This document shows positions 4,213 to 63,878 of a stretch of DNA of 64,000 nucleotides, in pieces. The notes below the pieces were generated by a model. That model was not told the DNA's origin, ran no database searches, and saw only the letters and a program-made list of their open reading frames with translations. Origin of the DNA: Pocillopora damicornis (Eukaryota). The position numbers and the translations under genes were made by a program. Each line of letters starts with the position of its first letter. Position 1 is the stretch's first letter. The stretch covers positions 310,001-374,000 of the forward strand of contig NW_020846501.1 in NCBI RefSeq assembly GCF_003704095.1. Direction: 5' to 3'.

Positions 4213-4420
4213 CCACTGCAGATATTCCCGGCCAGCTGATCTGTTAACAGTCCTACGTAGGCATCATCCGGTCCAATTCGAGTAACCTGCCTCGATAAGT
4301 CGAGCATTTTTGGAAGTAAATTCGCCAACAGAACATGCATAGCTCCTTTACAAAACTGTGGATAATAGTCTGATGAAAGTTCGTCTTTAGTCACGTAATG
4401 AGAACCCCCTTTTTCTCTTA
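4213..4420 (-). pseudogene. Inverted internal fragment of a GT31 beta-1,3-glycosyltransferase
   Basis: HYVTKDELSSDYYPQFCKGAMHVLLANLLPKMLDLSRQVTRIGPDDAYVGLLTDQL matches the intact copies; no N- or C-terminus. Confidence 0.9.
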
Positions 4421-4424
4421 CTAC

Positions 4425-4525
4425 AAGTCTTTAGCCGTGAGTCTTTTTCTTTTAGCCGTGAGGTTTTCTCTTTTGTTGTAAGTCTTTTCTTTTTGCCGTG
4501 AGGTTTTTTCTTTTGTCATGAGTTA
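4425..4525 (+). repeat. Short tandem repeat (ttttgccgtgaggttttttc-like units)
   Basis: About five ~20-bp degenerate units. Confidence 0.7.
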
Positions 4526-4669
4526 ATTAAGTTGATAAAGGGTGTACCCGAAGTGTCGTCCATTTTTACAGATTAACGAGCTTCGTTCTTTCGAACAAGT
4601 TTCTTCATCATGAATTTAGTGCAGAGGATGAAAAGGAGAAGTAATTACAAGTACAATCACCTTGAATAA

Positions 4670-5410
4670 TCACCTTTAAAGGAGAAGATGTCAAGGAAAT
4701 CTACTTCAAATCCATTGTACCAGCAGTAACTTATGGTGTTGGGGTGTGGAGAAACTGCAGTTACTCTACTATGGACTCTTTAAATCCTGTTGAAGTGAGA
4801 GCTGTACGAGTTATCCACCAGGATAAAAGCCTTGAAAAGCTAAATTGGTTGCCAATTTCTTATATATACAAAAGAAGACTCCTTCTCCGGAAGCATGATA
4901 TTTTAAATGATTAAGTCTTACGTCCCCCTTTTCATTTGAAGTTAGGCGACAGACCATCACGTAGGGGTGGGTTACAGATTGAAATCCCTGGGGTGAAGTA
5001 CAAAGTGGAATGGAATCAGCACAATACAGAGGCCCTGTAATCTGGAATTTTATTACTAGGTTATTAAATTTTAATGCAAACGTTCAAAAAGACAGTTTTA
5101 AAAACATTTTACGTAGGCTCTCACAAAACATAAATAGCTTCTCATTCGAAGCACTCATGATAGCTATGAAAGACCGAGATTTTGTATATTTTAAAGTATT
5201 ATTATAATGTGCGTAAATTTCTAGATTAGTTTGTAATTTTTATTTGTCAATGAACCTCATTTTATTGACTTGTACTGAATTCAAATACCATAGGGTGATT
5301 TTACAAATTATTTTCTTTATAATTTCACATTTTATTTCAGTGTTAATTGTAGGTCCACATCAGCCTCATGGCTGCCACTTTTGTAACCTACATCACTAAA
5401 TAAAATGATT
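4670..5410 (+). mobile_element. Decayed 3' end of a CR1/L2-like non-LTR retrotransposon
   Basis: Translates as KEIYFKSIVPAVTYGVGVWRNCSYSTMDSLNPVEVRAVRVIH...YRGPVIWN, typical of the post-RT region, with stops and frameshifts; followed by a 3'UTR-like tail ending in aataaa. Confidence 0.7.
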
Positions 5411-9016: not shown

Positions 9017-10102
9017 ATGACCAAGAAAGTTCGTTGGCGGAGACTTTTTCGATGTGGACTATGCTTTGCAGTAACAGTGGGCCTGATGAATTATTTCATA
9101 CCCTCTTTAGACCAGGCAGTACAAACAAGTCATCGTCAAATAGATCTTAGGAAATATCAAAGCAATTTTCCCATCCTGTCCCCTTCCATTGAACCACGAG
9201 TTACCAACTTCGAAGACTTATTCGTTCTGGTGATAGTTTCAACTTCGCCCAACGATGAGATGAAAAGAAGAGATACGATACGTCGTACTTGGGGTAAATG
9301 TGACGAAACTAACAACAATTACAAATGGAAGGTTGTATTCATGATGGGAAAATCCTCGAGTAACGACAGGAATGAAAAATTAATGGCAGAACACAAACGG
9401 TATGGAGATCTTCTTATAGCTGATTACATCGACAAGTATCGAAACATCACGACAAAACTTCTCATGTCATTTAAGTGGGCGACGCGAATTAGATGTAACT
9501 ATATTCTGAAAACTGACAGCGATGTTTACGTTGATATTCCTGAGTTAATGAAATGGTTGCTGAATCGAGGCCATCCAAACTCTCTGTACGCTGGCATTCT
9601 GCACGGAGGCACTGTAATAAGAAAGAGGGGGCATCGTCATTACGTGAGTAAAGACGAATTTTCGTTAGACTATTATCCACCGTTTTGCAAAGGAGCTATG
9701 TATGTTCTGTCAACGAGTTTACTTCCAAAGATGCTCGACTTATCAAGGCAGGTCACTCGAATTGGACCTGATGATGCTTACGTTGGACTGTTAGCAGATC
9801 AGCTGGGAATATCTGCAGTGAGAATTGAAGGTTTTTTTCAAAGAAGGCCTAACTTTTTGTGGTTAATAAGTGAATGTGAGTTGAGAGATCTCCTTGCGAT
9901 TGGTGATTTTCTTACTCCAAGTCAATTGAACTACATTCATGAAGTGAAGCATGCTAAGACTTCTGGGCAGGGGTTCGACGCCTCTCACAGTCTTTGTGTA
10001 TCTCTGTACATGAAATTGTCCCTGCTTCGATTATTCTGTGTAATCTGTTTACCCAGTCTGTTTTTTTTCGGCTATAGAAGAAGTAAAACAAGAATTTCAT
10101 AA
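9017..10102 (+). CDS. GT31 beta-1,3-glycosyltransferase (B3GALT1/B3GNT-like), copy A1
   Basis: N-terminal TM, RRDTIRRTWG, DYIDKYRNITTK, DxD motif KTDSDVYV, YPPFCKG, PDDAYVG. Likely ATG at 9017 just after acceptor ttctgcag; the ORF track starts at 8996 inside the intron. Confidence 0.93.
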   Translation: MTKKVRWRRLFRCGLCFAVTVGLMNYFIPSLDQAVQTSHRQIDLRKYQSNFPILSPSIEPRVTNFEDLFVLVIVSTSPNDEMKRRDTIRRTWGKCDETNNNYKWKVVFMMGKSSSNDRNEKLMAEHKRYGDLLIADYIDKYRNITTKLLMSFKWATRIRCNYILKTDSDVYVDIPELMKWLLNRGHPNSLYAGILHGGTVIRKRGHRHYVSKDEFSLDYYPPFCKGAMYVLSTSLLPKMLDLSRQVTRIGPDDAYVGLLADQLGISAVRIEGFFQRRPNFLWLISECELRDLLAIGDFLTPSQLNYIHEVKHAKTSGQGFDASHSLCVSLYMKLSLLRLFCVICLPSLFFFGYRRSKTRIS

Positions 10103-38609: not shown

Positions 38610-41600
38610 TTAGTAATGATGATAGGAGGGTTTTATAACCAGCCGCGGTGATTTGTACCCAGTAGGGATAGGTGATATACTGTTTGGTTGTGAGCGAGTG
38701 TTGATTTGAGATGAAGAGCTCTGCTTCTTCCAATCTTCAGATGTCTCGGGAATGTCGGTTTTTCTTCGAGTTTCCTCGTCAATCGGTGGGGATCTGCTTT
38801 CCATGTCCTCGATACATATGGACTTTGTGCGTCTTCTTTCCGAGCCGACAGTATTGGGGGAATCCCCCTTAAAATTATTTGTGGATCGAACAAAACTCCC
38901 ATTTTTTCGCTCAGTCGCGGGCCTCTCTTCAGGAATTTCAGTTTTTCTTCGTTCTTTAGTCACTTCTTTCTTCATCTTTTTCTTATTTTTAGTTTCGTCT
39001 TGTATTGCAGGCGTTCTTTGCGACGTCGTTGTTACAGCGGTGATATCTGAACTGAAATCTTGTGATTTACTATGTGACTCTTCATCTGATGAAGGCTCGG
39101 GATTTTCAGATTTTCTTTTCTTTCTCTCCTTTTCTTTTCTTTTCTTCTTTTTCTTTGTCTTGGTCTCGTTATTTTGTGATGCAACACACCTGTCACTCTG
39201 TTCTTCAGATGTACCTATCGCTACAGTCAATCCATCCTTTAAGTCCAGAATAGAATTTGCCTTTTGTTCCTTGGACGAATCATCCGAATCAACCACTTTT
39301 GTCTTCGTTTCCTTCTCAGCTTTCTCTTTCTTCTTCTTCTTTTTCTTCTTCTTTTCCGTAGCAGCAGTATTCTTATCCTCAGTGACTTGTTCAGCAACTG
39401 GTTCATCCATTGTGGTTCTAGCCACTTCCGGACGGCTTTCCCCAAATCTAGTGGGCTCTGCTGTAGATTTTCTCCGCTCGTTCAAAGGCGTAGTTGGCTT
39501 TACACGGATTTTTGTCACGCTTTCTTCAGAGTCCTCTTTCACCCCTGTAATCGCGGCAACGGAAACAGAGTTTTTCATTTTCGCCGTGGGAGTAGCTGAT
39601 AGTCCACTCCCCTTCATTTTTTCCTTCCCAGAACTCTCCGCATCACTGATTCCAATTTCTTCCGCACAAGGCGAATGTCTAGAACCTCCTAAAGTTGACG
39701 CCATAGTGGCCTTTTTCCCTTTAGAGTAAGTGTCTTTCGGGGTAACAAGTCTCCTCTCAAAAGCTGGGGGAGGCTTTCCACTATTCTCGTTCAAGTTCTG
39801 CTCCGTCTTAGACTTGTTTGGACTCTTGACTTCCCGCGCGGAACCTTTTCGAATCCCTTCGTCTTCGCCAACGGGAATTATGGAAGACCTCTTGGAATTT
39901 TTCACACCGTTTGAAGGCGACAAAAAGTTTTTCACCTTCTTCTGCTTCTCTTGTTTTTTGTCCTTGGCAGGCAGGAAAACCGTGTCTTCACTGGCGTCCA
40001 AGCTTAAATCGGAGGAAGCAATGGAGCTCTTCCTTTGTTCATTAACATTACTTGCATTCACGGATAGCTTTGCATTTCTTTCAGCAGGTGTAGGTGATTT
40101 TGAATTTCCTCCCGGCTTCCTATGAAAAACTGGAGAACTACTTTCAGTTGCTTCTTCGTTCTCGATAAAAGCTGGGTTTGTAATACCTGGCGAATAAGGC
40201 GGGCTAGAATGGGAAGGACGAATTACTCGTTCATCATCGCTATTCAAAATGTCGCTCAAGGTGTCATCGTCTAAATTCGAAATGCTTCCGCTATCAGTAA
40301 TCCGCTTGTCCTCAATATCAGAGTCGTCATCGTCTAGAATGAGTCTTGGAGGAGTCCGCTGATTATGTAGCTCAGTAGGTTCGTAGGCCGGCACAAGGGA
40401 CCTCACGGGGTAGCCTGGGGGCCACTGCTTTTTACCCTCGACGTTGTTTCGAGGCAAGTTCAGCGAAGATGAAGCGCTCCCATTGGCTGAATGAATGAAA
40501 ATATCGAAAGGCTTTAGGTGACGTAGATTGCATGGCAATATACAGCTGTTTTTAATTGGGTTTCGAAAGTAATCTTAGATTATCTGGGTAATTTGATATT
40601 ATCAACTGAGTTGATTACGTCAATTGACCACCGTTAAGAGTTTCAAAGCTGACGTTGGCGAACGAATAGCGAACGCACGAAATGTCAGCTTTGAAACTCT
40701 TTAGGGTGGCCCATTTTCGCTATCAACTCAGTTGATAATGACCAAATTACCCTGTCATCCTCTCCCGTCACGCAGCACCACAGTTTCTTTGGAAACTTAC
40801 CCCCTTTCATCTGAGATTACATTGGTTTTGCTTCACAACGCTCTGTGAAAAACCTTGAACCTACGCACGAGCGGAATCATTCGATAAAGAAACAGGTTGG
40901 TGCGCAAATCTCGTGATCTTGTCGGGGAAAATGCATTAACCGTGAACATCGTAAGATGGGTTTTAGCAGGTGTGGCTTAGTGAAAAGATAGCAACATGTT
41001 ACCGGTCTTAGTTTTCAACCAGGAAAGAGTGCAGTGTCGTGCGATAACTGTGCCTGCTTCGTGTCCAATAAATACTACAATGAAAGTTCACTAGGTATGT
41101 ACGTTGCAAAAAGACTTGAATCCGAACCTTAGTCTGACTTACATTCAAACTCTTTTTAGACTCTATAGATTTATATTTTCACGTACGTCCACAATGCCAG
41201 GAACGACTAATGTTAAGAAAACTTGCCAGTGTGAACAGAGTTTTTTTATTTTTACATACCTGAGACACGCTCATTTTCTTCCATGGCTTCCTTAATTTTC
41301 ATTTGCTTCAGTTGCTGGTCTGTTTTGTGATTCAAACGGTTGCTGTTGATCGGTGTAAATTTCTTTTTAGACAAAAGCCAGGATTGTTTGATAAGCTGCC
41401 ATAAAACACACAAAGTAACGAGTCCCAAGATGGAAGCGCCTGCATAAATCATCGGCTTCAAGTCCATATCAATGGGCGGGATCCCCTCTGTCGGAGGGAG
41501 GGGTGGAGGTGAAGGCGTGGGCGCTTCGTGCAGATCATATGAGTCACCATACATGGCGGACAACATAAAGGATGAATAAATGGTAGTTCCATCCCATAAC

Positions 41601-44600
41601 GGAAAAACGAGAGAACTGTTAACTTGTAACTGTCTTAGTAAGTCAAGGGATAGTTCAAGCGCAGTATCGTTTCTTCCGTAGATTGTGATATTGGCAGCTA
41701 AACTGTCGCAGTCCTCCTCGATCATATAGTAGCGGTCTGTGTTGTGATAGTTAAATTGCTTCTCATTTTTTTTCTTGTTACTTCCTTTCATCCGACCTCC
41801 CACTGCCAGGCGCTTCGCGCGATGATGTGCCCTGATGCTTGTCACGTCCACCCCGCAGTATGGCCGCTGACCAGTGGCACAGCTCGTGTTGGTCACTGTG
41901 ATCTGACTCGGTGGAATGCTTGTGAGGCTTGTAATTCCTTTTCCCAATGAGTTTGTCAAGTTTTCTTGAAAATTTTTAATCTGATTACAGTCTAGCACAA
42001 ATACCAGCAGCAACGTGAAGTTCCAAGTTGGTTGTGCTATAACTGGTGGGGCTGCAAAACGACAAAAAAAAGAGAATGAATTTTGGCTTCCAGGCTCAAA
42101 GCAAAGTGGTCGGTAAACGAAATGGACACTATCTTGAGTGCTAAAAGGAATGTATTCATTCTCTGCTGTTTGAAGTTTGCTGACCGTGTAAAAAACGGAA
42201 AAAAGAAAACGAAAAACAATTTCATTCTTGTATTTTTAAGGAAAGAGTCTTAAAGAATCGATTCTGCTGAGCTTTGAAAAAAAAATATTCCAGTCACTAT
42301 TTTGCATTAAATTTGGAAAAACTCAAGGTTGGTGCCTAGTTTTTACTGCTCTCTCGAATCCAGTCTTTGCATCTTTCCGAGAAGAGACTTTCAGTTAACT
42401 TACAATATCTATTGTTTACAGCTTTTGTCATGTTCTGTGAATTGCCTGAGAAGAGACTTTCAGTTGAGGAGCGTGGCTCACCTTCTGCGAGACAGCAGCT
42501 CGCTAATCTACTTACAAGATCTGTTGTTTACAGCTTTTAGCATGTTCTGTGAATTGCCTGAGAAGAGACTTTCAGTTGAGATGCGTGGCTCACTTTCCGC
42601 GCGACAGCAGCTCGCTAATTAACTTACAAGATCTATTGTTTACAACTTTTGTGATGTTCTGTGAACTGTCAGGCTGAAAGTCTTTTTAGATTTGGTGATG
42701 AAACTACAAGTTCCGTCCCTTTGTGTGTTGGCCCCACTGAATGGAAACATTTGTATTTTATTCGAACTCGGATTTTACTGCTGCTCAAACATTCTCTTTG
42801 GATTTTTTTAATGTTTGTTTATTCTGTATTCTTTTTTTTCGGCAAATACTTCAAGAACGCCGAGATAACCAAATACAGACTTGTACTCGATTTCGTCCTA
42901 AGTCAGCCAAATTTAGCCAAACAGGTTTCTTCATTTTTAAAACAACGCCTACTTTGTAGGAAACTTCTTTTTGTAAAAACAAAGTAAAAAAAAAAACAAT
43001 ACTTTTTCCTTACCTGTTACAGGTGAAATTGAAATGTTGTGACACTTGTCACAGCAGTAGGTTGTATTTAGGGGACAAATACAGCAGGCCCACTGAGACG
43101 CACTCTCATTAGATGCACCTGTCAGGTTCACAAAAGTCTGCTGGTTAAGAGTACTGCAGGCTGAGCTGCTATTGGTTCGACATTGGCAGGCGTTATTCTC
43201 CACAAGACATGGGTTGGCTGAGATCAAACCGTTACAGGAACCCTATGGAAATATTGATTAGCTGTTAATTGCTTAAAACTTAATTGTCACCATTTTTCAA
43301 GTTTTTCACAGTTCTTTTCCTCGAGTTTCCTCGAGACTGTGAAAACAAACCTTTCAGTAGCTATAGTTTTCGTTTGTTTGTTTGTCCCTTCATGCTAGGG
43401 AAACTGGGATAAGCTCCGGCCGAGTGTGCCACATGGCTTAGTACAGACGTAATGGAATAAAAGCTGCCCCTTGGGGGAACGAATTAATAATGAAGTGAAA
43501 CTGCCCCTTGGGGGAACGAATTAAGTCGTTTCTTCGATTTGGGGTTTGAACCAATACAACTTTATTATAGCGAACCAGCATTAATGCATCTTCTTCTTCT
43601 GTTATTCTTTTGACAACAATATTTATTTTTAAGAACTATCACTCAGAAATTGAAGTTTCCCCCTGAATATTTTTTTTCTCAATTTATCTGAAACACCGTT
43701 TTTCCGTGTCTCCAAAAAGATTCCCCGAGCAAAATAAAATTAAACGCATGTACATGTTATGAAAATTTAGCCTTGGGTTATAATGCCCTTAACATAACTG
43801 TTATTCCAATTAATTATATATGACTTGTAGGACAAGGCTAATTCAGCTGCGACTTCCATTCTAAAGCGCACCACGATAAAATATTAAATATCTGCTTTTC
43901 AACAGAAAAATGGGCGTCGTTTTATTAGGAGCGCGTAAGTTCGAGTGCTAAAAAAAAATATTGCGAGTCAAAACACCGCAATGGATGTTTGCTTTCTATC
44001 GATTTCTAAATTAAGAGATAATTTTTAAATCAGATGCAGCGCAAGCAAACTTTGAAACTGCCAAATGCGCTTTTTCAATCAAGTTTAGAAGGATTATTCG
44101 TATTACACCTTTTATGAATAATAACATTTATAATAACCTTGCCAATTTTTTTTGTTAACAAAAAGGTTTTTGGTCGACTCATTCAAATAGAAAAATCGTC
44201 TGCATTAGTATTGATACTAATACGATACGATACAAGACCATCGGATAACTTTAACCTTCTAAGTCCTTTTCGCGCCGGTAATCTCCTTAATGAAGAAAGT
44301 GATCGACCTAACCGCAAATAGCTGCTCGGTAATATAAACCCGAAATATAAAAACACCGAACGATTTTCTCAACTGATAATGTCAGCTGCCTTATCAATAC
44401 GTGTATTTTGTTCGCTGAAATTAATTTTACTCGGCATTCGCGTTAACTTTTCTTTTCTTATGAATTGCGACAAATTTTTTAGTGCACTAATTATGATTGT
44501 ACATGTCCTATTATCTCGTTCAATTTCCCAGCTTAAGCTTAGCTTAGATAATCCATTTTTACGAGTCCGCAGATCTTAGATGCATTTTGAGTATATCTAG

Positions 44601-47428: not shown

Positions 47429-49617
47429 GAATCACTATTTTTTTCCCTTTTTCTTGACGTAAGCTCGTTGAATAGTACAGTGAGTTCTTCGAGAATTTGG
47501 ATAAGAATAATTTTGGGAAATTTTCGTTGACAAAGCCATCTGGCGGTTGTAAGGCAATGGGATAAAAATATGTCTTCAGTAAGTAATGTAGCTTTAAGGC
47601 TCAAATACGCCATTCTTATAAATTCGATATACCGAAAGGTGCAAGAGCAGTTCTAGGTACATATGTTAAGAGGTGAAAATTGAGTTATTCTAAGAATAGA
47701 ACTGTTCTATCGGAGCAATTTTTGATTGAGCATCCAGAGTAATCCGGCATCGCATTGGTTTTGCATTTCTTCGCACCGTGATTGGTCCAGAAAACTCGCA
47801 CCAATCTCTAAACCGATCTGATGCAAAAAGANNNNNNNNNNNNNNNNNNNNNNNNNNNNNNNNNNNNNNNNNNNNNNNNNNNNNNNNNNNNNNNNNNNNN
47901 NNNNNNNNNNNNNNNNNNNNNNNNNNNNNNNAAAATTAAAGGATCATATATGGCAAACGTTTTCGTAGCTTTAACTCATGTTCTGCCTCCAAAGTACAAA
48001 TGCCCAAATTTAAAACGGAAGACACTATTCAGCTGACTGGACGATAATCTCTTGGGCTTAGGCGTTCGTAATAGTTAAATCTGGCTAGGCAGTCTATTTT
48101 ACGTGAAACTCTCATATTGATATCTAAATTGCCGTGTAAAATACAGGCCAAAAGCGATTGAAAAGCATGTGAAATTTGTCAGCCCTTTCAAAGAATGTTC
48201 TCACTTGCTATTCACTTGAAACCTTCAACAAACGCATGCGCTTTAAAGCTTTGACAGCGATTCGCGACTTCACACGAGACAGCCCCGTATTTTAACTAGA
48301 GTCTGTAGCGTGGCGCCTCAGTGAAAAATGTGTGACCTGAAGAAAAGGCCGGAACCACTTTTTGCAGATAAAAATAGAAACCCGGATGGCTTCTGAAACT
48401 TGATGAAGACGCGTAAAATGAATCTGGTGTCAAATAGGGCTTCAACATGACGTTGAAAACTTTCTTTTGTAACTCCTTTGTCTCGTTAACAACACAGATT
48501 TAAGCGTCGATCAATTTGAAGCTTCCACAGTCCTTCTCCCTGGCAACCCCACAGGCATCTGTACCACCAGGGGTGGGGAATTTGAGCCTCGTTTGGGTAA
48601 GGTGCCAAATTTGAACCAGCCGAATATTCTGGTGTTAATTTTAATACTGGTGGAGTATCAAGGTAAAGAATCCGCTTTCGTGAGTAAATGGCTTAGAAGA
48701 AATTTTCAAATCGTCGAATGATGCTTACAAACGGAAAAACCAAACAGCGGCACTACAAAATAGTACGTGACTTTCCTGAATTCTACAACGTTCGTTGATC
48801 ACACGAAGGATCGTGCAATAAAAAATTGTGCTGGAACAGGACATTTAAATACAGCTTTGAACAAGCCAATCTTCAAAGGTTTAAATGTCCGCGGGGCTGT
48901 CCATGGGGGAAAATTGAAGCTTTGAACTGATCGACGCAGAAGCAAGCAGAGTTTCACTGCACAGACTGACCAATCAAGATCAAGAAAGCGTATCAAAATC
49001 AACATCAGACGGATAAAAAACATTTAATGTCTTTGACATAACGTAGCCATTTTTTATTTAATCTAATCTATGTAATTTTTTTAGAGATTTTTGTTTCTCT
49101 TGACATTCTAGGTACTTATTTGTAACAAAAGAAAGTAGTTTTAATGTCAAAATCTATTAAAAATATTTCTAAAATTGCAATATATGTTTTCGATTTTTTA
49201 AATCTGTTTGTAGTGAGTGTTACATTTAATTCAACAATTAATTGTTTGTAACACCGTTATTAATTAATTTTTCCTCGTACAAGTAGAGCGCCTTTCAATT
49301 GAGTGTCGTGTTTTTTACTTAGGTAAAAAAATACAAGGAGCCAATGAGAACTCAAAGTAAGAATAGCCAAACGGCTTGAAGCGCGGGAAAACGCGTGTGA
49401 CCAAGTCGTGATTGGTTTCGGGTTTGCATTCGACTGATTGGTGGAGAAAATGGCACGGGTCTTCTTGATCAATCACAGAACAACAAAGAGTAAAACGAAT
49501 GAAATTCCGGATTTCATTTATGCCAATGATCTCATTAGCCCTTGCCTGAGGCCCAACACTGGGGAGAATCTTCTCCACTGTCGATTTACGTAACTTATCC
49601 GCAACAATGTTGTGAAA

Positions 49618-51477
49618 TTAACAGGGGCAGACAAAGTAGCCTGAGAGAGTCTTTGAATCCACTTTGATACAACTTGCATGGAAAAGCTGTTTACAACTGC
49701 CGCATCTCTTCCGCATCTCTGCATCTTCTCCATCGCTGTCTCGACACACTTTGCAGACGTTGATATTTCTCCTACAGCGGACGGAACATATATTTCATGA
49801 TCATTTATTTAATTATGTCTTCTTTTTTCATTGGCTCAGGTTTGACTCTAACTCTATATCAAGATCAAACCTGATGCTTAGCAAGATTAAGGGATATACA
49901 GTTTGGAAACAAGCTGCGACTGAGGTTACTTACTCGAGGATGTCATCGTAACAACAGCCAAATATCATAGACGTTATTCGTGCACGTTCGGTTGCTACGT
50001 CGAAATTTGCATCTACAGAAGAGCCTTCACACAAACACCTTGCAAACTGAAAGAAACGATCAAAAATGACAATCAATCATTAGGGAAAATTCGTGAAGAA
50101 TATGCAATATTCCCATAAATTCATTTTAAGGCAGAAACTATCGGTTGTTGAGGTATATTTAATCATATGCACTTCTTCCAGCGGCTAGCCTATCGAACGG
50201 TATTGCTCGTTATCTTGTGAGGGTAAAGATTTCGTACCTTGATACCTCATAATTTAATGAGGATAGTGACTTCTGTAATAAACTTAAAACAAATGTCGCG
50301 AGTGGGTGCATAGCGAGTTGGCTACTTACGAGACAAATGAGAATTCCGCAGTTGTACCCATCTTTTTGTTTAAAGTGCACTGGCTCGATGCAAGGCCATG
50401 ATAGAGAAAGCCAGCCCGTTCTGGTGTCAGTGACCCCACTACAAATATGATGACAGGCAAATAAAGGGTTACTTTAAACTGACTGCTGTTTTAAATTGAA
50501 GGAGCGGAATTTTTTCACTTACGACTTTATAATTATACACCTGTTCTAAGTACTGAAAGTAGACATTGCATGCCTATCATATTCGCTCTTCTGTAGGCAG
50601 AACAAGGCAATTCAATAAAGACATGTCAACAGTACTTGGTCTTACCTTATCTTATTTATGCGTGATGCGAGAGGAGGATCTGTTAAAGGACTAATTTCTC
50701 GTTGAAAATCTCCCGCCAAAGGGTCAAAGTAGTACCTGGCCGCTTTTGATTTGTCCAAGACCTTTAAAACAAGAAGTCCGGGTTCTTGGTTTCACCTCAA
50801 ATTAATCATATACTCAGTTTCATCGATTGCATTTGCTATAAATTGGTTATGTCTTTCGGCAAACCAATTCTATTAAGTTAAAAAGAAAACCTACCAACAG
50901 AGTCCAGTGAATTCTACGTGCCATGATCGGAACAAATATCCTGGTAATATTTGAGAAGCTTTCTCCTGACCACAGCGAACTCGTACTAAGACCTTTTTCA
51001 ACAATTTCAGCCAAAGTGCTGTCTGCGCAAAACAGGCCGTCATACTGTAGGGTGAATTTCCATAGCACAGCTTCCACAACCTGGTGTAATGGAAGATATA
51101 TAAACATGAGACAAAGTCCTATAAGGCGATCGTTCTTGATTGTAGGTTATACATAATAATATTTTATAACGCAGATTGCTTTATGAACATGCTACCTTGT
51201 CTACGAGCCAACCCCCGACAAAGTTCCTTATAGAGCTCGTCACCAAGGAGCATTGCTCGGCCTCAAGCGGAGGAAGAAGTGTCCATAGGTCACCAACGGT
51301 TAGTCTTGAAGGTCCGATCTCAAGCATGACGTCGTCTATCTCTAGGTTAACTCTCCAGGCATTAAGGAGACGCGTGACATGATCACATTTGCGTGGTTTC
51401 TGTACAGCAACTTCGGTGCCGAGGAACTCTACTTTCCAGTTCTGGCTCGACAATTCATCTTCTTTCTTTTCCCTCTT
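49618..51477 (-). CDS. Ulp1/SENP-like (peptidase C48) cysteine protease plus C-terminal PHD finger (last six exons)
   Basis: Exons 51477-51196, 51080-50895, 50761-50646, 50438-50330, 50046-49934, 49771-49618 give 960 nt in frame with GT-AG sites. GWLVDKVV, IHWTLL (His), YFDPL (Asp), QKDGYNCG (Gln/Cys), then CKVC...CGSCKQLFHASC...CPC*. Confidence 0.85.
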
Positions 51478-52597
51478 CTGAAATGTAACAGTTGTACAAT
51501 TGCAATCGAAAGCCTGGAGGGATGTGGGATTTATGTTCACAATCCACCTCTGCTGACACAGAGTAAAACATTTTTATCTGTAAAAAAATACTCCCAGCTG
51601 GAGTCCACTAGTGGGGGGGAAATATTAACCCGCCACCCTATTGCAAGTTAAAAGATTGTTTTATTTATTCTTTGGTTAAGCCAGCACGTTACTATTTGTA
51701 GCGTTCATAAAGGTAAGGACTTCCTCATCCAAAATGATTGTCTGAAATTTCAAGTTCAAAATCTTATGGTTTTGATGGGTAAATCGAATGAAGCATCATT
51801 GCAAAAACCAACTACAAAAATAATTAGTTAACATACGATTGGTATCCATGGTAAATAGTCATTTTCTTCTGGCACCTTCTTTCTCATTCCCATTCCTTTC
51901 TGCAGAAAAGTAAATCATAAGTTATTGTGGCAAAATAAAATTCCATTAGCAAGTTCTATTGCTACTTCATTTACATTGATTTGTAATTAACTCTGTGTTT
52001 GAATAATACTCTGAATCTTGAGAGTGCTGTTTTAGGTGCCCAATGAAGTAGTATGACCACTCATTCGCAACACACTTAAAATGAGAACTTAAGGATCCAG
52101 TTATAATTACTATATAACTAAATGTAACATTCCACCAACATCTTAAGGGGTCTTCGGTTTTCACACGTGATACTTCTCCTCGCAAGTCTATGACTGAAAT
52201 GTCCAGTTGCCCTTGAAGGTCTACTGTATTGTTCAGATAAAGGCTACTTACATTTACAATCATTACTGATGTTCAAAGATCACGAGTAATATAAAACGAG
52301 TAATATAAAATGCCCACCAATACTACAGTCCAAAACTTCTAATCAGTTATGTATTATTTAACTGGTTTATTTTATGCATATTTCTTATCAAGTGTAGAAA
52401 ACAAAGCAAAGAGAGAAACAAGGCACACATAGCTGACCAGTTAAACAGGTTTTTCACACATAGCTGACCAGTTAAACGGGTTTTTCACAATACAAAATAA
52501 CCATCTGTCCAAACATCTTGTGATGTTTGTACTTTTTTTGTGCGTTATTCGTACTACACTTAGTGCAGTTATATAATAAAACAAGATATTTGTATAC

Positions 52598-53386
52598 TTG
52601 CTGTTCTGAAATCTTATACAAAGTTTCCTTCTGTTGAGCTACTGTTCGCCTTGTCACCATGGAAAACATTTCCAAGTTGGTAGGCATAGAAGGTGCCTGG
52701 TCTACAATGAAAACAATTGTTAAAACAAGGAAACTATATCAGTTTAATGATTCTTGCATTTAATGCAGTCACTAGGAGTGTACATCACAGAGTAGCAGCT
52801 TCAGTTATACAAAATCCATATAGCAGATTCTCTCTACTGATGACCACACATTTCCTTTAGATTGAATTATAAGAATTTGGTTTTGTATCAGGATAACACC
52901 CTCTGGCTGATAGACTTATCTTTTCTCAGAGCCTGCTTGGGAGAAAACATATTGGAATAGTAGGGAGAAGTTAAATTTCAAGCAATCACCTCTATAAATT
53001 AAAGGGTTAAAAGGAACAATCCTGGTGTTGCTATGAATTTTCCTAGGAACCCACACAACACAAAAAGGGAACACTATTTGGCATTCTTCCTTGCTATTGT
53101 AATACCAAATACTTTAACACTTCTTTGCAGTATCTTATCTATCTGTAGTTACTTAATTACCATTACCTGATGAATTATTCAGCTCTTGAGGCTCAGTTCC
53201 CAGGCAAATGGCCTGAAAAGATAAGTCCAGCCAAAATATTTCTAATAGCTACTATCTTACTTTCAATGAGTGTTTGTGAAAAAGACTTCAATGCTGGGCT
53301 GTGAATTTATTTGGACACAACAGATCTTCACAGGTGTCCTTAACAAAAACATTTCTTGGCATGCAATTTGAAGCATAACCACCATG

Positions 53387-53420
<34 letters not shown>

Positions 53421-56400
53421 AAAGGCTATGAAATGCACTATTCATCAAAAATTATATTGTTTTAGCTTGATTCAGTGGTAAACCGAACTGGGTGCAACAA
53501 TTTGAAATGGAAGATGTTTCTTTAAGAAAATTAATCACATATCAAATCTGACTGCAAAAATTAAAACTTCCTCACAGTCCTAATCCCGTGGGGATGGTCT
53601 TCAAAACCATGAGGATTTTTATTGGCTGGTTTGCAATTAATCTGTCAAGTTCGCTGATGAAAATTCTACCAATACACAACACTGTGGAGGCTAATGCAGG
53701 AGATCCATTTTGAGAAATGGAATGCCCCCACATGTCACATATCCTATTAATTCATTCAAAGAATGCTCATGCGCGTAAAAACCAAGCATTTTATTGGTGC
53801 TTCTAGAGTTTTCCCAGCAATTCAAACTTTTGGGTGACCACTTCAAGTTTTTTCAACACTCCAAATGCCAACCACTGATAAAAACACAGAAGCATCCTGC
53901 AGAGTCTCAGGAGACCCTCAGCAAAAACATAATTATTTTGAGGGTAACTATCTAACAGTTACCTGAGAGAGACGTTTTGTTCAATTCTGCTAAACAGCAG
54001 TTTTGATTTCAACTCTTTTTTTTTTCAACTTACAAGTGGCTTTAGCATGCCGTGACAAAAAAATCATGATTGATGATCAAGTGCTAGCAGAGAGGATTGC
54101 CTAAACCTCGAGCCTTTATCTATTTCAGTGACCTCTTGTGCTGACAGCCAGCTTTCTTTTTTACTTCCACCAATAGACTCCTCTCCTTTTGTCTCTCTCC
54201 ATTCATATTTTTGTTTTAAATGTAGACGGATAGTAATGATCTCCATGTTCAACCAAAATCAGGAGGTTTTTACGCAATGGAAATTCAAGGAACAGGATGT
54301 TTTCCACAAGAAACCCTTCAGGAGTCATTTATGCTGACATGTTGTAATTGGCTATTCACACTTTGGTGGGTGAAAGCATTCAGTTCATACTTATTTGTAA
54401 ATGACTTGCATGCATTTCAATTTTTTGCTTTTCTTGAAAACCCTCATTAAAATAATAATGCTTAGTTTGACAAGAAAAACAAGTTTAAAAAATTGGCCCT
54501 TGACAGTCTACTATACCCTTAAGATAAAGGCTACATTTACAATCATCACTGATGTTCAAAGATCACAGACCACCTTAAAATTGTGGTTGATAACCATTTA
54601 ACATAGACTAAAAGAAGCACTACTAAAATACCCCTGATTCTTCTCAAAATTTGTTCTCATGTCTTTGGTTATCATTTGCCTCCATGAGCTCCAAATATTT
54701 CATAATGTTTACATTGATGAAGGTTTTATTGACCAAATTTAAACATAAAAGTTATTTACCTGAACTACCTGAACTGCTGAATCATTGTGGGAGCTTCTCT
54801 CTGATAGAATTTTTGGTCCTGTATTCCCTGTTGCCATAATATTTTCTTGGTTCCCAATAATTTCAGGTAACATGTCTACAATGACAACTATTGTTAAGTA
54901 AAAAACAATTTTTTTTGTCCCATGCTTGTGACATAATGAAAAGCATCTTTCTCTATAGAAACTATAACTTTATTAATGATTTTTGCACTATGTGCAAGTG
55001 TGGAATCTTGCCACAGTCTCAGGTGGTCTTTGATCTTTTGGTGGTATTTAATATCATACACTTAATGCCTGCTCCTGTGGGAAACAGTTGATTTTGTTTT
55101 CCTGAGCCTCAAGGGTTCCCAAGACAAAAAAATGAGCATGTGCAACAATGAAACTTTTTTTCTTGTAGACATTGCAATTGTACCATCTTAAAGTCTGTGT
55201 ATTCCATCTCACTATCAAAAGGTCTGACCATTTTTTTTTTATATTTATCTGTAGTTACTTACCTATACCCATCTCCTCTTCAGCTATTCTTCTTGCCATC
55301 TCTGCCTTAGCTTTCTTTAATTCTTCACTTATTGCGTGGTTCCACATGATTTCCCTCACATTCACAAAGCACTTAAAATGAAAACTTAAGGATCCAGTCA
55401 TATGTATGGTAAGGTTCTAAATAAACCGATGTTGACTATATAACTTAATGTAACAGTTCCACAAACATCTTAAGGGGGCATGGGTTTGCACATGTGATAT
55501 TCCTTCTCACAAGTCTCCAACTGAGATGTCCAGTTGCCCTTTCAGTGAAGTACACATGGCTCGCAATCAAAAAATTACATGCAAATTTCAGCAGAAAAAC
55601 ATGCATGCAGCCATGTAACAATTAAAATTGATCAGCTCAACTTCATAGGCTCATATCTAAATATGTTCCTACTAAAATAAGGGCCATAAAAAAGATTAAT
55701 ACATGTAACAATGAGAAAAAACAAACAGCTGTCTGAATAAATAAATCAATTCATGAATGAAGTTGTTGCAACATTATGTTACCTGAGACAAACCTTAATT
55801 CTCTTTAATTCTGCTAAACAGCAGTTTTGATTCCAACTATTTTTTTTTTCAACTTAAAACGGCTTAAGCATGTCATGGCAAAAAATTCATGGTTGCTGAT
55901 CGAGTGCTAGCAGCAAAGATTGCCTAAACCTCAAGCCTTTATCTGTTTAGGTGAGATTCTGTCGCCATTCCGCCTCAAATTTCTTAACCTCTTGTACTGA
56001 CAGCTAGCTTTCTTTTTATATTTTCACTTATGGACTCTTCTCCTTTTTATCTTTCTCCATTTGCATTCTAGTTTTAAATGCAGACAGAGAGCAATAATCC
56101 CCACATTCAACCAAAATCAGGAGATTTTGGAATTCAAGGAACAGGATGTTTTCCCACAAGAAACCCTTCAGGAGTCATTTATGTTGACATGTTGTAATTT
56201 GCTATTCACACTTTGGCAGGTTAAAGAATTCAGTTCATACTTTTTTGTAAATAACTTGTGCGCATTCCAATGTTTTGCCTTTCCAATTTTTCTTGGAAAG
56301 ACGACCACCTTTAAATAATGGTTGATAACTATTTAACATAGACTAAAAGAAGCACTACTAAAATACCCCTGATTCTTCTCAAAATTTGTTCTCAAGTCTT

Positions 56401-59400
56401 TGGTTATCATTTGCCTCCATGAGCTCCAAATATTTCATGATGTATACATTGATGAAGGTTTTATTGATCTTTAAACATAAAAGTTACATACCTGCACTAC
56501 TGAATTGTTGTAAGAGTTTGTCTCTGATGGAGTTTTGGGTCCTGTATTCCCTATTGCCATAATATTTTCTTGGTTTCCCATAATTCCAGGTAACACGTCT
56601 GCAATGGCAACTATTGTTAAGTAATAGAAACAGAATTTTTCTTTGTTCCACGCTCATAACAAGACAAAAAGCATCTTTCTCTACAAACTATAATTACTTA
56701 TTAATGACCATTTTTTATATTTATCTGTAGTTACTTACCTATATTCATGTCCATGATTTCTCTTGTGATTCTTAGGTTTAGCCTTGATAATTCTTTCTCT
56801 TTCTCCTGTAATTTCTTTTCCATCTCCTGACGGTAACACTATTAAAATATTCGGCATCGTTTAAGGTCAGAATACTGATCGATACCTACTTCCATACACT
56901 AATCCACTACAAGTCATGTGGAGTGACTTACAGGTAATGAGCATGAACGAAGAGTATTGTCCATCGCTTCTCATACTTTAGACATGGTTTAGGTAGAAAG
57001 CAAAATGCACTCTGTGATTGGTCAAGGTTTGACAGCAAGTTTTGCAATTGATCATCATAGAAGCTCTTTCTTCTGGCGATGTGTTCGATCTCTAAGGTGT
57101 CTTCACCACATTCATGATTATCGAGACTAGGGAAGTAAAATTGTGGTCGAAGATAATAGAAATGGTGATGGGGATACATGAGTTGACAGATTACTGATTT
57201 TTAATGAGGCGATTGACAGAAAATGCACTGTACTTAGTGGACGAACGAAAAACAAAGAAAATGTAGTCGGTAAACACACCTTTTGAACAGAAATGAATCG
57301 AAGTTCACTGAGAACTTGAACCCGTGAAAACTTCAAATATGTGACATTTATTGCCTAAAAAGCCATGTGCGAAGAAATACTAAATTCTGAATTTTTGGTC
57401 GTAATGGTGGCCGTTCAAAAAAAAAGTTGAGCTTGAATTTTCTTTGCAGAAGAGTATGTTTTCTCGCGATGAATAAGGACATTTGCTGTCAGATGCAATT
57501 ATTAACCGTGCGATGTACGACTATTAAGTCTAAAAGCCAGTTAAACACGACTATTAATGAGTTTGTACGCGATTAATAGTTGTACTTAACAGGATTATTA
57601 ATCGTGATAGAAGACGCTTTCAGACTATTAATCGTAAGAGATACCATTTGCAATTAATAGTCTTACTTTAAGGACTTTTGCGCCAAATAATCGTAAAAAA
57701 ACACTCCGGAAATTAATAAACACCTGAAGGGATTTGGAATGTGATGTATGTTAGCAATCCACCTTCCCATGAGACAGAGTAAAACACTTTTAACCATCAA
57801 AAAATTGTTCCCAGCTAGAGTCGACCAGTGTGGGGAAAAATGTAATCCTATTGAAAGTAAATAAAATATTGTTTTATTTACTGGTTTAGCTGATGAACAT
57901 CATCTTAGAAACTCTTTACGGTGGTCAATTTATATTATTTACTAAGTTAATACAAATTATCTTGTAATATTCATTAAGATACATACTTCTGAATCCTTCT
58001 TCAATTCCCTGAACTGGGCTTTCAGGACTTTATTTTCTTCTATCAATGCCTATAGCAACCATAATAAATACATAAATAAAGATCTAAGAAAATCATCAAT
58101 AATCAATAATAAATAATAATAATCAATTAATAACAGATAAGTTAATTGGTAGTTAAATGTCCAATAAATAAATAAAATAGGCAGCGCTTTCAATAAGACC
58201 CAGCACCGGCCAGTCAGCTCTAGTTATTCTGTTGTGTATTGCTAGGTACATTTTGTCACATCCAAGTCAAATTTACAGAACAAAAATACAAATTTATAGC
58301 ATGTAAAATCAGTTTTTAATTTAGTATTGAAGTATTCAACTTCTTTTTTTTTCCAAATTCTGTTTCAGCTTTCTTTTTCTGCTTGTTTTGTTTGTTCTGC
58401 TAATTAATTCACCATGTAGAAAGTCTGGGTGCATGTGAGTTGGTTACTAAAGACAATTTCAAACAACTTTCTGCTGAACTAGCTATAGTCATCAAATATT
58501 TTTGGACAAATACCAAAACAGCAGTTCTTCTCAACTGTTGTTTAAATAGCATGCTGGTCAATAACACATGTAGATCAAATTGATGACTTTTTGGTTAACA
58601 TGTTAAGTCAAAAAATATGGTCTTTTTTTAAGGCAGGGCACTGAGAGGTTTGTCTACAATTGCAAGCAGAAGAAAACTGTGCAAACAAAGATAATTGTGT
58701 AATATTGTGAGACAAAAAGGGAAGTGTGAATGGAAGACAATAGAATCTGGCTTGGCTAAGTGTAGAAAGGTTTGGATTGTATATTATTCAAACATGATAT
58801 ATACATACCTGCACTTCTGAAATATCATTTGACTGAGACTCTGTGCATAGATCTGTGACCAGTATCTTTGCTACAGTTTGCCCTGTTGCAGGATGTAATG
58901 TTCTCCCTGTTGGATCACCACTGGAGCTAATCTTGGAAGTTTCCAGGCCTAAAATGAAAACAATTGTTTAAACATGGAAACTATGATTTCTCTGTCAATG
59001 GTTTTTGCACCATGCAGTCAGCATGCAGAGTGTACACCACACAGTGGTAGTTTTAGTTATTCTTTGTTCTTCTTTCTGGTAAATACATGTAACATCAACA
59101 TCAACATCACCATGTAGCAAGCTAAAATCATTGAATGGCAAGAGAACAAGATTAGGCTTGTACAGGATTTTGTGCTTGAGTTTCAAATACCTTATTTACT
59201 TGTTCAAAGAAGTTAACCCTTTAAAATTGAAGACCCAGGATTAGTAATTCTTCCTACTGACCACCATACATTTTCTTTAAAATTTAATTGTTTTTATTAT
59301 ACACCAGATTTAAGAAAAATTTAAAGTGGTTAAAAAAAAATGAAAACAGAAAAAGATGCCAAATACTGAACAGAACATAATCAGAAAAGAGCTGCAAGGA

Positions 59401-60010: not shown

Positions 60011-62635
60011 TATAATTTTAATATCTTGTTATCTTTTTCCAGGTAATGAATTCTGAAAAAAAAAAGTCATGCATAAAATTTAGTTCCAAGTTACCATATA
60101 AAATGACTACAGGCTTTGGTCTAAACAGAAAGAAATAACCAAGCAAGGGGCAAACAAAAAAGGCAGAAAGAGAAATAGTTAACAAGTTCTAAGAAACTTG
60201 AAAAATGAAATGCTATAATTATCATAGCTATACACATATTAGTTATTAAACTTCAAGAATACTTATGGAATATTTCAGAAGTCATTTTAAATGAGAAAAA
60301 ATTAGGAGAGGTTTTTAACTACATTTTAGCCCTTCACTATGAATGGTCTTGACGTTCTAAACTCTTTCGAGAGTTTTATAAATAATAACTTCACAACAAA
60401 GTTATAGCCAAATTGTTCTTCCGTAGAAGCTTACAACTACAAGTGAATAAGTGCAGTTGATTACATGTTCGATCGAATGTACAGTATATTTCAATCGAGG
60501 ACTCTTGATCGTAGTTTCTGAATCGATTCTACATCGACTTTAGCTTCATTAAAGACGCCATTGTTATTCAGTGACATGTATATGAGTGGCCAGGTATTCT
60601 GCAGTTGCTCCGGAAATTTTAAGGGGTAAAGCTTATCAGTAATTTTAAGATTTCGTCAACTGTTTCCAAAGAACGAAACTATTTTTGCAGAATATGGTGA
60701 ACGATTTCAATTTAATATAACCCAGGGTTAGTGTGAAATTTTATTTCAGACCTGAAAGCTTTAAAAAATTCAGCTTAGGTGTTTTGTCTACAATGCTATA
60801 ACCGGACTCTTTGAAAAGGAAAGAAGAAATCAGTATTTGAAAAAGGGTTCCTGAATATAGAAACAAAGAAACCTGGATTCAATTTTAACCCTGGATTGGC
60901 GCTGATCGGCCTTCGAACAACTAGGCCCTGAACTTGATTACACATCTAAACATCGAATGAACTGACCGCAAACTTAAACTGCACGGTTCAAACAAGGCGA
61001 GAAGGATCTGATCCGGTGGAATTGCTTTAACTTACCACAGAGAAAAGGTATTTTCTGTCACCTAATTCTTCAAAACTGCGACTCAGTCTTCTCATTGGTT
61101 TCTGCATGATCCCATGTCATCTGGCAAACACACTGAATTTCGAGCCCAGGGTCATTTTGGTTCCTTGTCAGCGGTATGGTCCCCCAATGGCGTAAGTAAT
61201 TCAAGTATGGAGTCAATGGAGAATTAATATTTACTCATGCTCAGTACATACCACATGATATATAGATTAAGGCAAGCCTAAAAGCGGAGCTCTTGTTAGT
61301 TTATTTTCTAGCCCCTCGTTGTAATAAAAACTGTAATAAAACTCTTCAGCACTGGCTGAGGAAGAGTTTCTTCAAAGAGATTAAGGGACCAGCCAAGGGG
61401 TGGGGAGGAAACGGAAGAATTGGCGAGGTCTGGAACCTGGGGACGACGTTCTCACAATTTGCAGTAAAACGCATGCTAGTCAGCTGTATCTGAGGATCTT
61501 TGTTGTTGTTCCAGATGTTTTGAGGAAATTCTCGAAGATAGAGAATCTTTTCTTCTCCAGAGGAAGTGTGCGATCTCAGCTTCAGTTGAAATTATATTAT
61601 TCTGAGCGTAACTGATAATTTTGGCTCAGGAAAATGAGCCAAAATTGAAAGAAACGACGTGCCCGGTAAACTACATCGAGTTTAGACATCACCAGTCGAT
61701 TGAAGGGTACACACGTGATAACAGTGAATTAGTAAATCAAGACGCCAGAATCGTAGTAGCTTCTTTTATATCTTCTTTTGAAGTTGCCAGGTATGATTGC
61801 TTGCCTCATCATTTTTTTCCCTAATGTTTCAACCTCCTCTTTTTCGCGTAAAAATTAAAAAGAAAAGTCATTTTCAACTCGTGCTTGAACCTGTAATTTC
61901 TTAAAACTTTTCCTCTTTTGGCTATTATTGTTTCATGANNNNNNNNNNNNNNNNNNNNNNNNNNNNNNNNNNNNNNNNNNNNNNNNNNNNNNNNNNNNNN
62001 NNNNNNNNNNNNNNNNNNNNNNNNNNNNNNNNNNNNNNAAGGTATGTTAATTAACTTTTTTATAGTTGCTTTTTGGAATGATGCATCATTCAATTTACCC
62101 ATCAAAACGATAAGATTTTTAACTTGAAATTTCAAACAATCATTTTGGATGAGGCAGCCCTCACCTTTAAAAACGCTACAAATAGTAGTGTACTGGCTAA
62201 ACCAAAGAATAAATAAAACAATCTTTTTACTTGCAATGGGGTGGTGGATTAATATTTCCCCTGCACTAGTGGATTCCAGCTCATTTTTTTACAGTTAAAA
62301 GTGTTTTACTCTGTGTCAGCAGGGGTGGATTTTGCGAACAAAAATCCCAAATCCCTCCAGGATCAAGCTAAAACAATTTAATTTTTGATGAATAGTAGAT
62401 TTCACAGCCTTTTCATTGATATATAGTGTATGGTGGTTATGCTTTAAATAGTGCTTCAAATCAAATAGTGCTAAAAACCTTTCTGTGAAGGACACCTTCG
62501 AAGGTCTACCATATCCATAATGAAGTGTCTAAATAAATTTACAGCCCAGCATTGAACTCTGTGCACAAACACTCATTGAAAGCAAGATAGTAGTCAAAGA
62601 TTTTAATAATGTTTTGGTTTGACTTAATTTTTCAG

Positions 62636-63878
62636 GCCTCTTACACAGGAACTGAGTTTCTGAAGCCGAATAATTCATTGGGTAATGGTAAGTAACTATA
62701 CAGATAGATAAGATATTGTGGAAAATATTTTTGATATTACAATAGCAAGAGAGAATGGGAAGTAGTGTTCCCTTTCTATGTTGTGTGGGTTCTTAGGAAA
62801 ATGTATAGCAACATCAGGATTGGTCCTTTTGACCCTTTTGTTTGTAGAGGTGATTGCATGAGATGTAATTTCTCCCTGCCATTCCAATATGTTTTCTTAC
62901 ATTCAGGCTCTGAGAAAAAACAAACTTATCAGCGAGAGGGTGTTATCCTGATATAAAACCAAATTCTTTTAATTCAATTTTAATTCAGTCGGGAGAATCT
63001 GCTGAATGGATCTTGAATCACTTCCTAGTGACTGCATAACAAAAAATCATTGAATTGTTATTAATAGTTTCCATGTTTTAACAATTGTTTTCATTTTAGA
63101 CGAGGGACCTTCTGTCGCTGCCTTGGAAACAGGGCAAGTAGTGGCTCAACTGCAAGTATGTAAATATCCTGTTTTATTATGTAACTCCACTAAGTATAGT
63201 ACAAATAACGCAGAAAAGAAGTATAGATATCACAATATCATCGGACAGATGGTTATTTTGTACTATGAAAAACCTGTTTAACTTGAGTCAGCTGCGCGTG
63301 CCACGCTTTTTCTATTTGCTTCGCTTTTTACACCTAATAAGAAATATGCGTAAAATAAAGCAGTAACTAATTATTACATAAGTAATTAGAAGTTACAGAT
63401 TATTGTATCGCTGGGCATTTTATATTGCTATTTGTTTGTATTTTGACTCACCCTCCAAGCTTGTCAAAATACAGTGCAACTTCTAAAAATAGTCAGTGAT
63501 AACATAAAGCAAAATGTCTAAAGAGATATAATTTTTAATGTATAAGTGTTGGTGGTAAACTTCAAATAGAGATTGATAGTAACCAGTGAAGTATAAATAT
63601 TTGTTAATCTGTCGTGATAATTATGAAGAATTTTCTTTGAAGAAAATTTGACCTAAAACTCAACTAATTTTGACACAGGAGGAGGAAATAGGATGATGTA
63701 AATGTGAAAAAATCATGTTGGGCTGCAAAAAAAAATTGTTTTCAGAGTTCATGATTATTATTACTTATTTTATTTATATATTGATCATTTTAATTTATGT
63801 ATTTATGGTTGCTAGACTCTGGAAGAAGAAAATAAAGTCCTGAAAGCAAAGCTCAGGGAGCTGGAGAAGAATTTAAAA
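62636..63878 (+). CDS. Partial paralog of the Ulp1-PHD gene's N-terminal exons, in inverted orientation
   Basis: Exons 62636-62687 (ASYTGTEFLKPNNSLGN), 63100-63155 (DEGPSVAALETGQVVAQLQ) and 63816-63878 (TLEEENKVLKAKLRELEKNLK) are in phase and similar to minus-strand exons at 53212, 52701 and 58049. Confidence 0.6.

Follow-up and report, generated by a model that had tools for sequence, protein, structure and literature searches.

What a Ulp1/SENP-type protease joined to a PHD finger is doing in a reef coral, and whether it is the product of a transposon or of the host, is the question raised by a 64,000-nucleotide stretch of the Pocillopora damicornis genome (NCBI RefSeq assembly GCF_003704095.1, contig NW_020846501.1, positions 310,001 to 374,000), referred to here as the window and numbered from its first letter. 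A sequence-only reading of this DNA had proposed a hidden six-exon protease-PHD module at 49,618-51,477, encoding either a transposon anti-silencing factor or a domesticated host gene, and these two options have proved to be the right ones to decide between. Our analysis shows that the module belongs to an expressed gene, which probably encodes a C48 isopeptidase with a PHD-type finger and descends from a protein module carried by Mutator-like elements (MULEs).

Read on the minus strand, the module consists of six exons bordered by GT..AG, which together give 960 nt, or 319 codons and a TAA stop at 49620-49618 (Table 1). This agrees to the base with the sequence-only reading, as does its remark that the list of open reading frames displays the module only in pieces. 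The window has a G+C content of 36.8% and five gaps of 100 N, none of which falls inside the module. The motifs that had been named can be read in exons 2, 3, 4 and 6: His, Asp, Gln and Cys follow one another in the C48 order with spacing typical of the family (17 residues from His to Asp), and exon 6 encodes a finger with the C4HC3 ligand pattern, C-x2-C-x13-C-x2-C-x4-H-x2-C-x13-C-x-C, which ends in CPC before the stop codon and has C-x-C as its final ligand pair versus the usual C-x2-C. A conserved Met near 51327 in exon 1 corresponds to the start of two relatives, the proteins P0039 and P0082. Two candidate exons were rejected: an 8-codon first exon from the ATG at 51571, with a 70-nt intron before 51477, because the RNA contigs join 51477 to 51837, and an extra exon at about 50590-50530 between exons 3 and 4, for which no frame fits and no joint occurs.

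Public sequencing data contain the spliced transcript. Part of the stretch is present in 22 public runs from nine studies, and the RNA runs contain about 0.3-0.41 of its sampled words, near the exon share. Splicing was read from contigs of four RNA runs (X1, X6, X15 and X17, from four studies) aligned to positions 49000-54900, a type of evidence from which expression level and transcript ends are not derivable. All five introns predicted beforehand are found in these contigs. The joints 49770/49933, 50046/50330, 50438/50646 and 50759/50893 occur in all four runs, and 51078/51194, the intron between exons 1 and 2, occurs in three and is absent from X6; unspliced contigs of low depth are also present. 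Every skipped part ends CT..AC on the plus strand (GT..AG on the minus strand), so the RNA is transcribed from the minus strand. An acceptor lies at 51477, which is joined to 51837 in four of four runs, and at least four further exons lie upstream of it in the RNA; the module thus forms the 3' portion of a longer gene, and the six exons of the sequence-only reading are correct, although their upstream limit is not where the gene starts. The sole open frame in each of the upstream exons U2, U3 and U4 is the one required by phase continuity, and the RNA contigs leave the 5' border of U4 unfixed. One X1 contig of 2178 nt continues upstream, its last 1197 nt being the module and the 3' untranslated region (UTR) as far as 49381.

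The gene is P. damicornis LOC113679136, whose RefSeq product, XP_027051889.1, is an 'uncharacterized protein' of 328 aa. This identity was obtained by searching exon 1 (94 aa) against 1.84 billion representatives, which yielded 38 matches at E <= 0.001, mostly open reading frames of exon size; XP_027051889.1 was found in the cluster of the best of them. The RefSeq protein is 100% identical to the window at 54246-54133, U2 and exon 1, and 94-95% identical over U3 and exons 2 and 3, where the alignments overrun the splice borders. It enters exon 1 by an alternative acceptor near 51549 and ends in INKIR and a stop because its reading continues into the intron after exon 3. The absence of exons 4-6 deprives it of the catalytic Cys, the last part of the protease domain and the PHD finger, and all four RNA runs splice onward to these missing exons. 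The module was consequently hidden in its last three exons, which are unannotated, and not in its first three, which XP_027051889.1 covers. The corrected gene model matters, as a RefSeq protein that ends before the Cys and the PHD finger would pass for an inactive fragment.

Assignment to the two families was judged against the Pfam gathering cut-offs of 20.7 bits for PF02902 (Peptidase_C48) and 24 bits for PF00628 (PHD). The nearest full-length relative in the window clade, P0005, is a transcript-derived protein of 295 aa recovered by the exon 1 search. The six exons are colinear on its residues 6-76, 77-137, 138-175, 178-211, 213-248 and 251-294, with identities for exons 1-6 of 65, 55, 61, 68, 67 and 53%. 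All five full-length relatives scanned first exceed the PF02902 cut-off (P0005 43.9, P0039 28.1, P0040 37.1, P0041 34.4 and P0042 52.6 bits); with P0082 included the range is 28.1-56.4 bits, and P0043 reaches just 16.4. For the finger, window exon 6 taken singly scores 22.7 bits with PF00628 (E 1e-4). Two of the four first-scanned relatives that reach the finger are above the cut-off (P0041 28.1 and P0042 32.9 bits), as is the genomic copy on contig C625 described below, while P0005 (20.3), P0039 (21.0) and P0082 (21.3) are below it.

A profile built from five relatives matches the structures of a Ulp1-like protease (6dg4, E 6.5e-5) and of yeast Ulp1 (1euv, E 1.8e-4), as well as SENP1, SENP2, XopD and many PHD fingers, and its WL.D motif is aligned on 1euv. 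Across 13 aligned relatives the H, D, Q and C columns are nearly invariant, and the eighth zinc ligand is variable (C, H or none). Named homologues of the same architecture come from Pocillopora verrucosa, Exaiptasia diaphana, Actinostola and Dendronephthya; the last three share 50-55% identity with the one from P. verrucosa, and the Exaiptasia protein ends in CPC, as in the window. Word-index protein searches with P0005, profile A2 and P0073 returned 5, 3 and 11 relatives, respectively, and with so few relatives the range of the family is known only roughly. A maximum-likelihood tree of 15 rows places the window gene with P0005, P0039 and P0040 (support 86/64), and the Atlas model of P0082, which is a homologue and not the window protein, matches C48 clusters at TM 0.52-0.64 by query. 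By its motifs and its close relatives, the product of the window gene is a predicted Ulp1-type protease with a PHD-type finger.

DNA and protein searches alike find the locus in a single copy. A partial DNA copy, 77-86% identical, lies on contig C649, where the paralogue contains stops, and protein searches revealed a small family, its exons arranged in the same order, on contigs C1830, C2813, C1417, C625 and C649. A sister subfamily is 43-57% identical to the window gene and has the same intron positions; at four of the five borders, the C2813 copy agrees with the window gene in exon limits and phases. The C1417 paralogue has been deposited as a protein model, P0085 (pdam_00008486), in which Tyr stands in place of the catalytic Cys (YNYG) and exons are skipped, so that a broken copy is annotated as a protein. 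The C1830 paralogue forms part of a 1.27-kb inverted duplication (3851-5122 versus 7310-6086, 87%).

The link with DNA transposons that had been suspected from the sequence is supported by this sister subfamily, which lies in MULEs. Sequence flanking the C2813 copy recurs elsewhere in the genome, one block of about 300-700 bp being found in both orientations, and this block brackets short units (C790, C1014, C625 and many others) that keep only a PHD-exon fragment and a 3' block. The terminal inverted repeat (TIR) arms of the C790 unit are at least 116 nt long and 88% complementary, and perfect 9-bp target duplications are found at the element termini in both of the complete copies (C790 and C625). 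The C625 element, a 3.2-kb MULE derivative that looks like the product of an internal deletion, carries an ALS2CR8-like piece (27.2 bits; cut-off 28.9) on the strand of the PHD exon, and an open frame of 133 aa in which the first part of a MULE/ZSWIM RNaseH-like domain, scoring below the cut-off, is fused directly to the PHD exon (31.7 bits).

On C1417 there are two transposase copies, the better of which matches MULE PF10551 at 41.3 bits and the ZSWIM1-3 RNaseH-like domain PF21056 at 45.8 bits. In one of them the transposase frame leads, on the same strand and interrupted by a single stop, into the start of a SWIM finger and then the N-terminal region of the Ulp1-PHD protein, after which come exon 1 and an inverted terminal block. 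In a distant family on C3703, a single frame of 659 aa, cut short by the end of the contig, encodes SWIM (25 bits), C48 (23.3 bits) and, at a score below the cut-off, a PHD-like finger (18 bits). Mutator-like elements of this coral genome carry the Ulp1-PHD module as a standard component, and the 9-bp duplications together with the Pfam matches place the sister elements with Mutator-like transposons rather than Zisupton.

Other sequences of note were encountered around these copies. A six-frame PF02902 scan of the genome gave 26 matches elsewhere, the window locus not being among them. These C48 matches, of which the genome has at least 26 (e.g., C1100:49385-49789, C3281, C3283 and C803), include several in long intronless frames of 294-659 aa and one that adjoins a YqaJ-like nuclease frame, and they probably represent other transposon families with Ulp1-like proteases. 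About 1.2 kb from the Ulp1-PHD-carrying element on C2813, a frame of 176 aa (L034:4816-5343; C2813:850815-851342) is a full-length match to sea anemone cytolysin (PF06369, E 1.7e-64). The 3.2-kb MULE derivative on C625 is inserted between copies of a methyltransferase array, made up of three tandem class-I methyltransferase frames (L036:975-1802, 2940-3728 and 9471-9998; Methyltransf_31/11/25, E <= 1e-21). On C1830, a PIF/Harbinger transposase (L033:8432-9561; HTH_Tnp_4 E 2e-9, DDE_Tnp_4 E 7.7e-22) lies 1.6-2 kb downstream of the Ulp1-PHD paralogue; since the remaining copies indicate MULEs, we consider it a neighbour of separate origin.

None of this holds at the window locus itself: the window lacks the TIR terminus motif of the sister elements, contig C3136 contains no match to the element blocks, and inverted repeats at the locus occur only within the 5' region of the gene. 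All 11 open frames of at least 90 aa outside the gene exons between 40 and 64 kb are without a Pfam match, and tblastn with the C1417 MULE transposase found nothing in the window, in keeping with the earlier statement that no cognate transposase is visible there; the copy-number and TIR checks that had been suggested gave the same picture of a lone copy. A frame of 327 aa at 41255-42235 on the minus strand has no Pfam match at E <= 0.001. In our reading, the window gene derives from the transposon Ulp1-PHD module and is now an immobile single copy that is transcribed, and this clean, transposase-free copy would be the easiest to express and assay.

In the MULEs, the module follows a MULE/SWIM transposase on its downstream side and in some cases at least shares its frame. 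Under the descent that we favor, the window copy would have lost, or never had, the transposase and the TIRs while gaining a 5' region of locally duplicated mini-exons. The protein is a putative active isopeptidase, as suggested by its His-Asp-Cys triad and oxyanion Gln and by WL.D and HW motifs that the profile aligns on yeast Ulp1. It may remove SUMO or a related modifier from chromatin proteins, with the finger potentially directing the protease to histone tails. Its role in the transposon might have been to counter SUMO-dependent silencing or to process a transposase polyprotein. SUMO is required for heterochromatin-based transposon silencing in animals, and a transposon-borne deSUMOylase directed to histone tails would therefore be a plausible counter-silencing device.

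Several results weigh against this account, and some of them favor one of its competitors. Scanned singly, none of the five protease exons of the window matches Pfam, the partial RefSeq protein reaches 20.0 bits with PF02902 versus the cut-off of 20.7, and phmmer comparison of exons 2 and 4 with PDB sequences gave either no match or one chance match (APC15, E 1.2). No complete autonomous element, with a transposase and all Ulp1-PHD exons, was found, the copies on C1417, C2813 and C1830 being rearranged or truncated. In the 15-row tree the MULE-borne Pocillopora proteins group together (98/99), and the order of the backbone is unsettled. As the shared introns would also fit the capture of a host gene by MULEs, the direction of descent is likewise unsettled, and the window gene or its clade might represent an ancestral anthozoan host Ulp1-PHD gene of which a copy was transduplicated by MULEs, as in the Kaonashi/KI-MULEs of plants. 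Such a reversal would be consistent with the intron positions and phases that the MULE-borne copies share with the window gene, which are typical of capture at the DNA level, with the homologues of the same architecture in Exaiptasia (including its CPC end), Actinostola and Dendronephthya, and with the capture of Ulp1 by MULEs documented in plants (PMC13317346). However, SWIM, C48 and a PHD-like finger occur in one uninterrupted frame on C3703, so that the module looks old in the elements; the window clade was found only among Logan and ENA sequences and in P. damicornis, and it evolves fast; and the named proteins of anemones and octocorals share 50-55% identity with the MULE-borne subfamily versus 41-44% with P0005. 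We consider the reversed direction unlikely, although not negligible.

Selection on the coding sequence bears on whether the gene is functional at all. The ratio of amino-acid-changing to silent substitution rates (dN/dS) was estimated roughly, over the six exons, from substitutions listed between the window and the RNA contigs of other samples, with 48 further differences lying outside these. Among the 29 substitutions listed, 23 change an amino acid and six are silent, compared with an expected silent share of 0.22, which corresponds to a within-genus dN/dS of about 1.1. The dN/dS check proposed in the sequence-only reading accordingly did not reveal the purifying selection under which a settled host gene would be expected to evolve, and with a ratio near 1 a host-gene function is unproven. 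This ratio would suit a functionless transcribed relic, that is, a decaying transposon fragment still spliced in poly(A)+ RNA, as would the 1-nt deletion in exon 1 of X15 (at 51425, upstream of the conserved Met where P0039 and the Exaiptasia protein start), the broken or partial paralogues on C649 and C1417, and the patchwork of tandem and inverted duplications that makes up the 5' region. Decay nevertheless appears improbable for a sequence that keeps 319 stop-free codons, four catalytic motifs and eight zinc ligands intact. The listed changes cluster in loops, with none at the H, D, C or any zinc ligand, and the Gln codon has a silent change only, in three runs; the three listed indels (-9 nt in the finger loop in X6 and X15, and +12 nt near the start of exon 1 in X17) keep the frame. 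All five splice-site pairs are used, in up to four studies, and relatives in the same clade (53-68% identical per exon) keep open frames that pass PF02902. That a transposon at this locus is still mobile and carries the gene as cargo, with ends and transposase that went unrecognised, we regard as extremely improbable: close relatives are indeed MULE cargo and the five N gaps could conceal sequence, but the locus is single-copy, neither TIR motif, transposase similarity nor, on C3136, element blocks were detected, and the transcript, whose locally duplicated exons extend over 5.5 kb or more, resembles none of the element copies observed. Descent from a MULE-borne module leaves room for a bolder proposal, which we put forward as doubtful, that the gene is a domesticated chromatin-targeted isopeptidase of corals acting on SUMO or another ubiquitin-like modifier, recruited from a MULE counter-silencing factor; the dN/dS near 1 with an untouched core would then reflect diversifying selection in a host-transposon conflict, and not decay.

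Table 1. Features of the Ulp1-PHD gene and of its surroundings in the window (positions as in the window; strand as read).
Feature	Position	Strand	Remarks
Module exon 1	51196..51477	-	94 aa, phase 0-0; linker and N-terminal part of the protease fold, ends GGWLVDK (WL.D)
Module exon 2	50895..51080	-	62 aa; catalytic His in the closing IHWTLL; RNA joints
Module exon 3	50646..50761	-	catalytic Asp in YFDPL; last 2 nt are part of a split codon
Module exon 4	50330..50438	-	oxyanion Gln and catalytic Cys in QKDGYNCG; joints in 4/4 runs
Module exon 5	49934..50046	-	C-terminal helices of the protease domain (FARCLCEG...)
Module exon 6	49618..49771	-	PHD-type C4HC3 finger, TAA stop
Upstream exon U1	51837..51899	-	21 codons, KGMGMRKKVPEENDYLPWIPI; RNA joints
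Upstream exon U2	52598..52701	-	RNA joints; ATG at 52687
Upstream exon U3	53161..53211	-	two in-frame donors, 53167 and 53161
Upstream exon U4	54759..54878	-	two in-frame donors, 54768 and 54759; similar copy at 56489-56624
RefSeq first coding exon (aa 1-38)	54133..54246	-	X1 and X6 contigs join U3 to 54759/54768 instead
3' UTR	49381..49617	-	minimum extent (X1 contig covers 49381-49770); enters high-copy repeat
Dispersed repeat, about 190 bp	49323..49519	.	just 3' of the stop codon, outside the coding module
Inverted, rearranged partial copy of the 5' region of the gene	62042..63429	+	51513-51836 at 87%, 52299-53471 at 70%

The surroundings of the gene are shaped by local duplication. The segment 53975-54980 is tandemly repeated at 55799-56707 (about 1.7-1.8 kb; blocks 78-96% identical) and carries an upstream exon with it, weaker copies of the unit lie near 52689 and 58936, and the RNA contigs include both exon copies; a joint that 'goes back 110' in these contigs is due to this tandem repeat. 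The inverted copy at 62042-63429 abuts the N gap at 61939-62038 and may begin a diverged head-to-head paralogue. For the dispersed repeat beyond the stop codon, a first look at the genome gave 1494 candidates, with an identity of 74-82% in those copies that were scored. Summed RNA contig depth is 230-990 over this repeat versus 4-36 over the gene, the repeat being carried in many transcripts.

The window protein has in common with Ulp1/SENP proteases (MEROPS C48, PF02902; 1euv, SENP1/SENP2) the order of His, Asp, Gln and Cys, the WL.D motif before the His, and HW. The similarity is distant (profile E 6.5e-5 to 0.03), and the protein differs from SENPs in its C-terminal PHD-type finger, in an N-terminus without SENP counterpart and in its kinship with transposons. 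Canonical SENPs lack a PHD finger, as the sequence-only reading noted, yet its fusion to a protease of this type is no rarity among uncharacterised proteins, the C48+PHD architecture being already common in databases. The ESM Atlas clusters nearest to the Exaiptasia homologue P0082 carry C48 and PHD and have 303, 88 and 64 members, mostly from chordates, one cluster being automatically named 'Ulp1 protease family, C-terminal catalytic/PHD-finger domain-containing'. These Atlas proteins have the same two-domain architecture in 254-350 aa, with feature scores of 0.94-0.95 to P0082, which refer to this homologue and not to the window protein and are neither alignments nor E-values.

Among transposons, Zisupton encodes a transposase in which a SWIM finger is combined with a Ulp1 domain at the C-terminus, and the C3703 frame resembles it. 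The target duplication of Zisupton is given as 8 bp (PMC12730594), whereas the coral sister elements have 9 bp in two of two copies and Pfam matches to MULE and ZSWIM1-3 RNaseH-like domains. Rehavkus, which is related to Mutator, is listed with a PHD finger in its transposase (PMC6446971); compared by description only, it is reported from arthropods and annelids alone, and Ulp1 has no occurrence in the main text of that source. A literature search found no paper on a Ulp1-PHD protein or on an animal MULE with Ulp1, although Repbase and the additional files of PMC6446971, which cover cnidarian MULEs and their domains, were outside this search and may already contain such elements.

A further parallel is with plant MULEs that contain Ulp1 (Kaonashi/KIU, and VANDAL of the VANC type), for which a role in the escape from epigenetic silencing has been proposed (PMC13317346). 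Like the coral sister subfamily, these are Mutator-like elements with a Ulp1 protease domain; they are non-TIR elements whose Ulp1, a fragment captured from the host, sits in a gene of its own, and the passages describing them report no PHD finger (PMC13317346). The coral elements differ from them in having TIRs and 9-bp duplications and in residing in an animal, and the window copy lies outside any element. If the window gene were indeed a domesticated isopeptidase, it would correspond in an animal to the VANC/Kaonashi anti-silencing system of plants, but put to use by the host.

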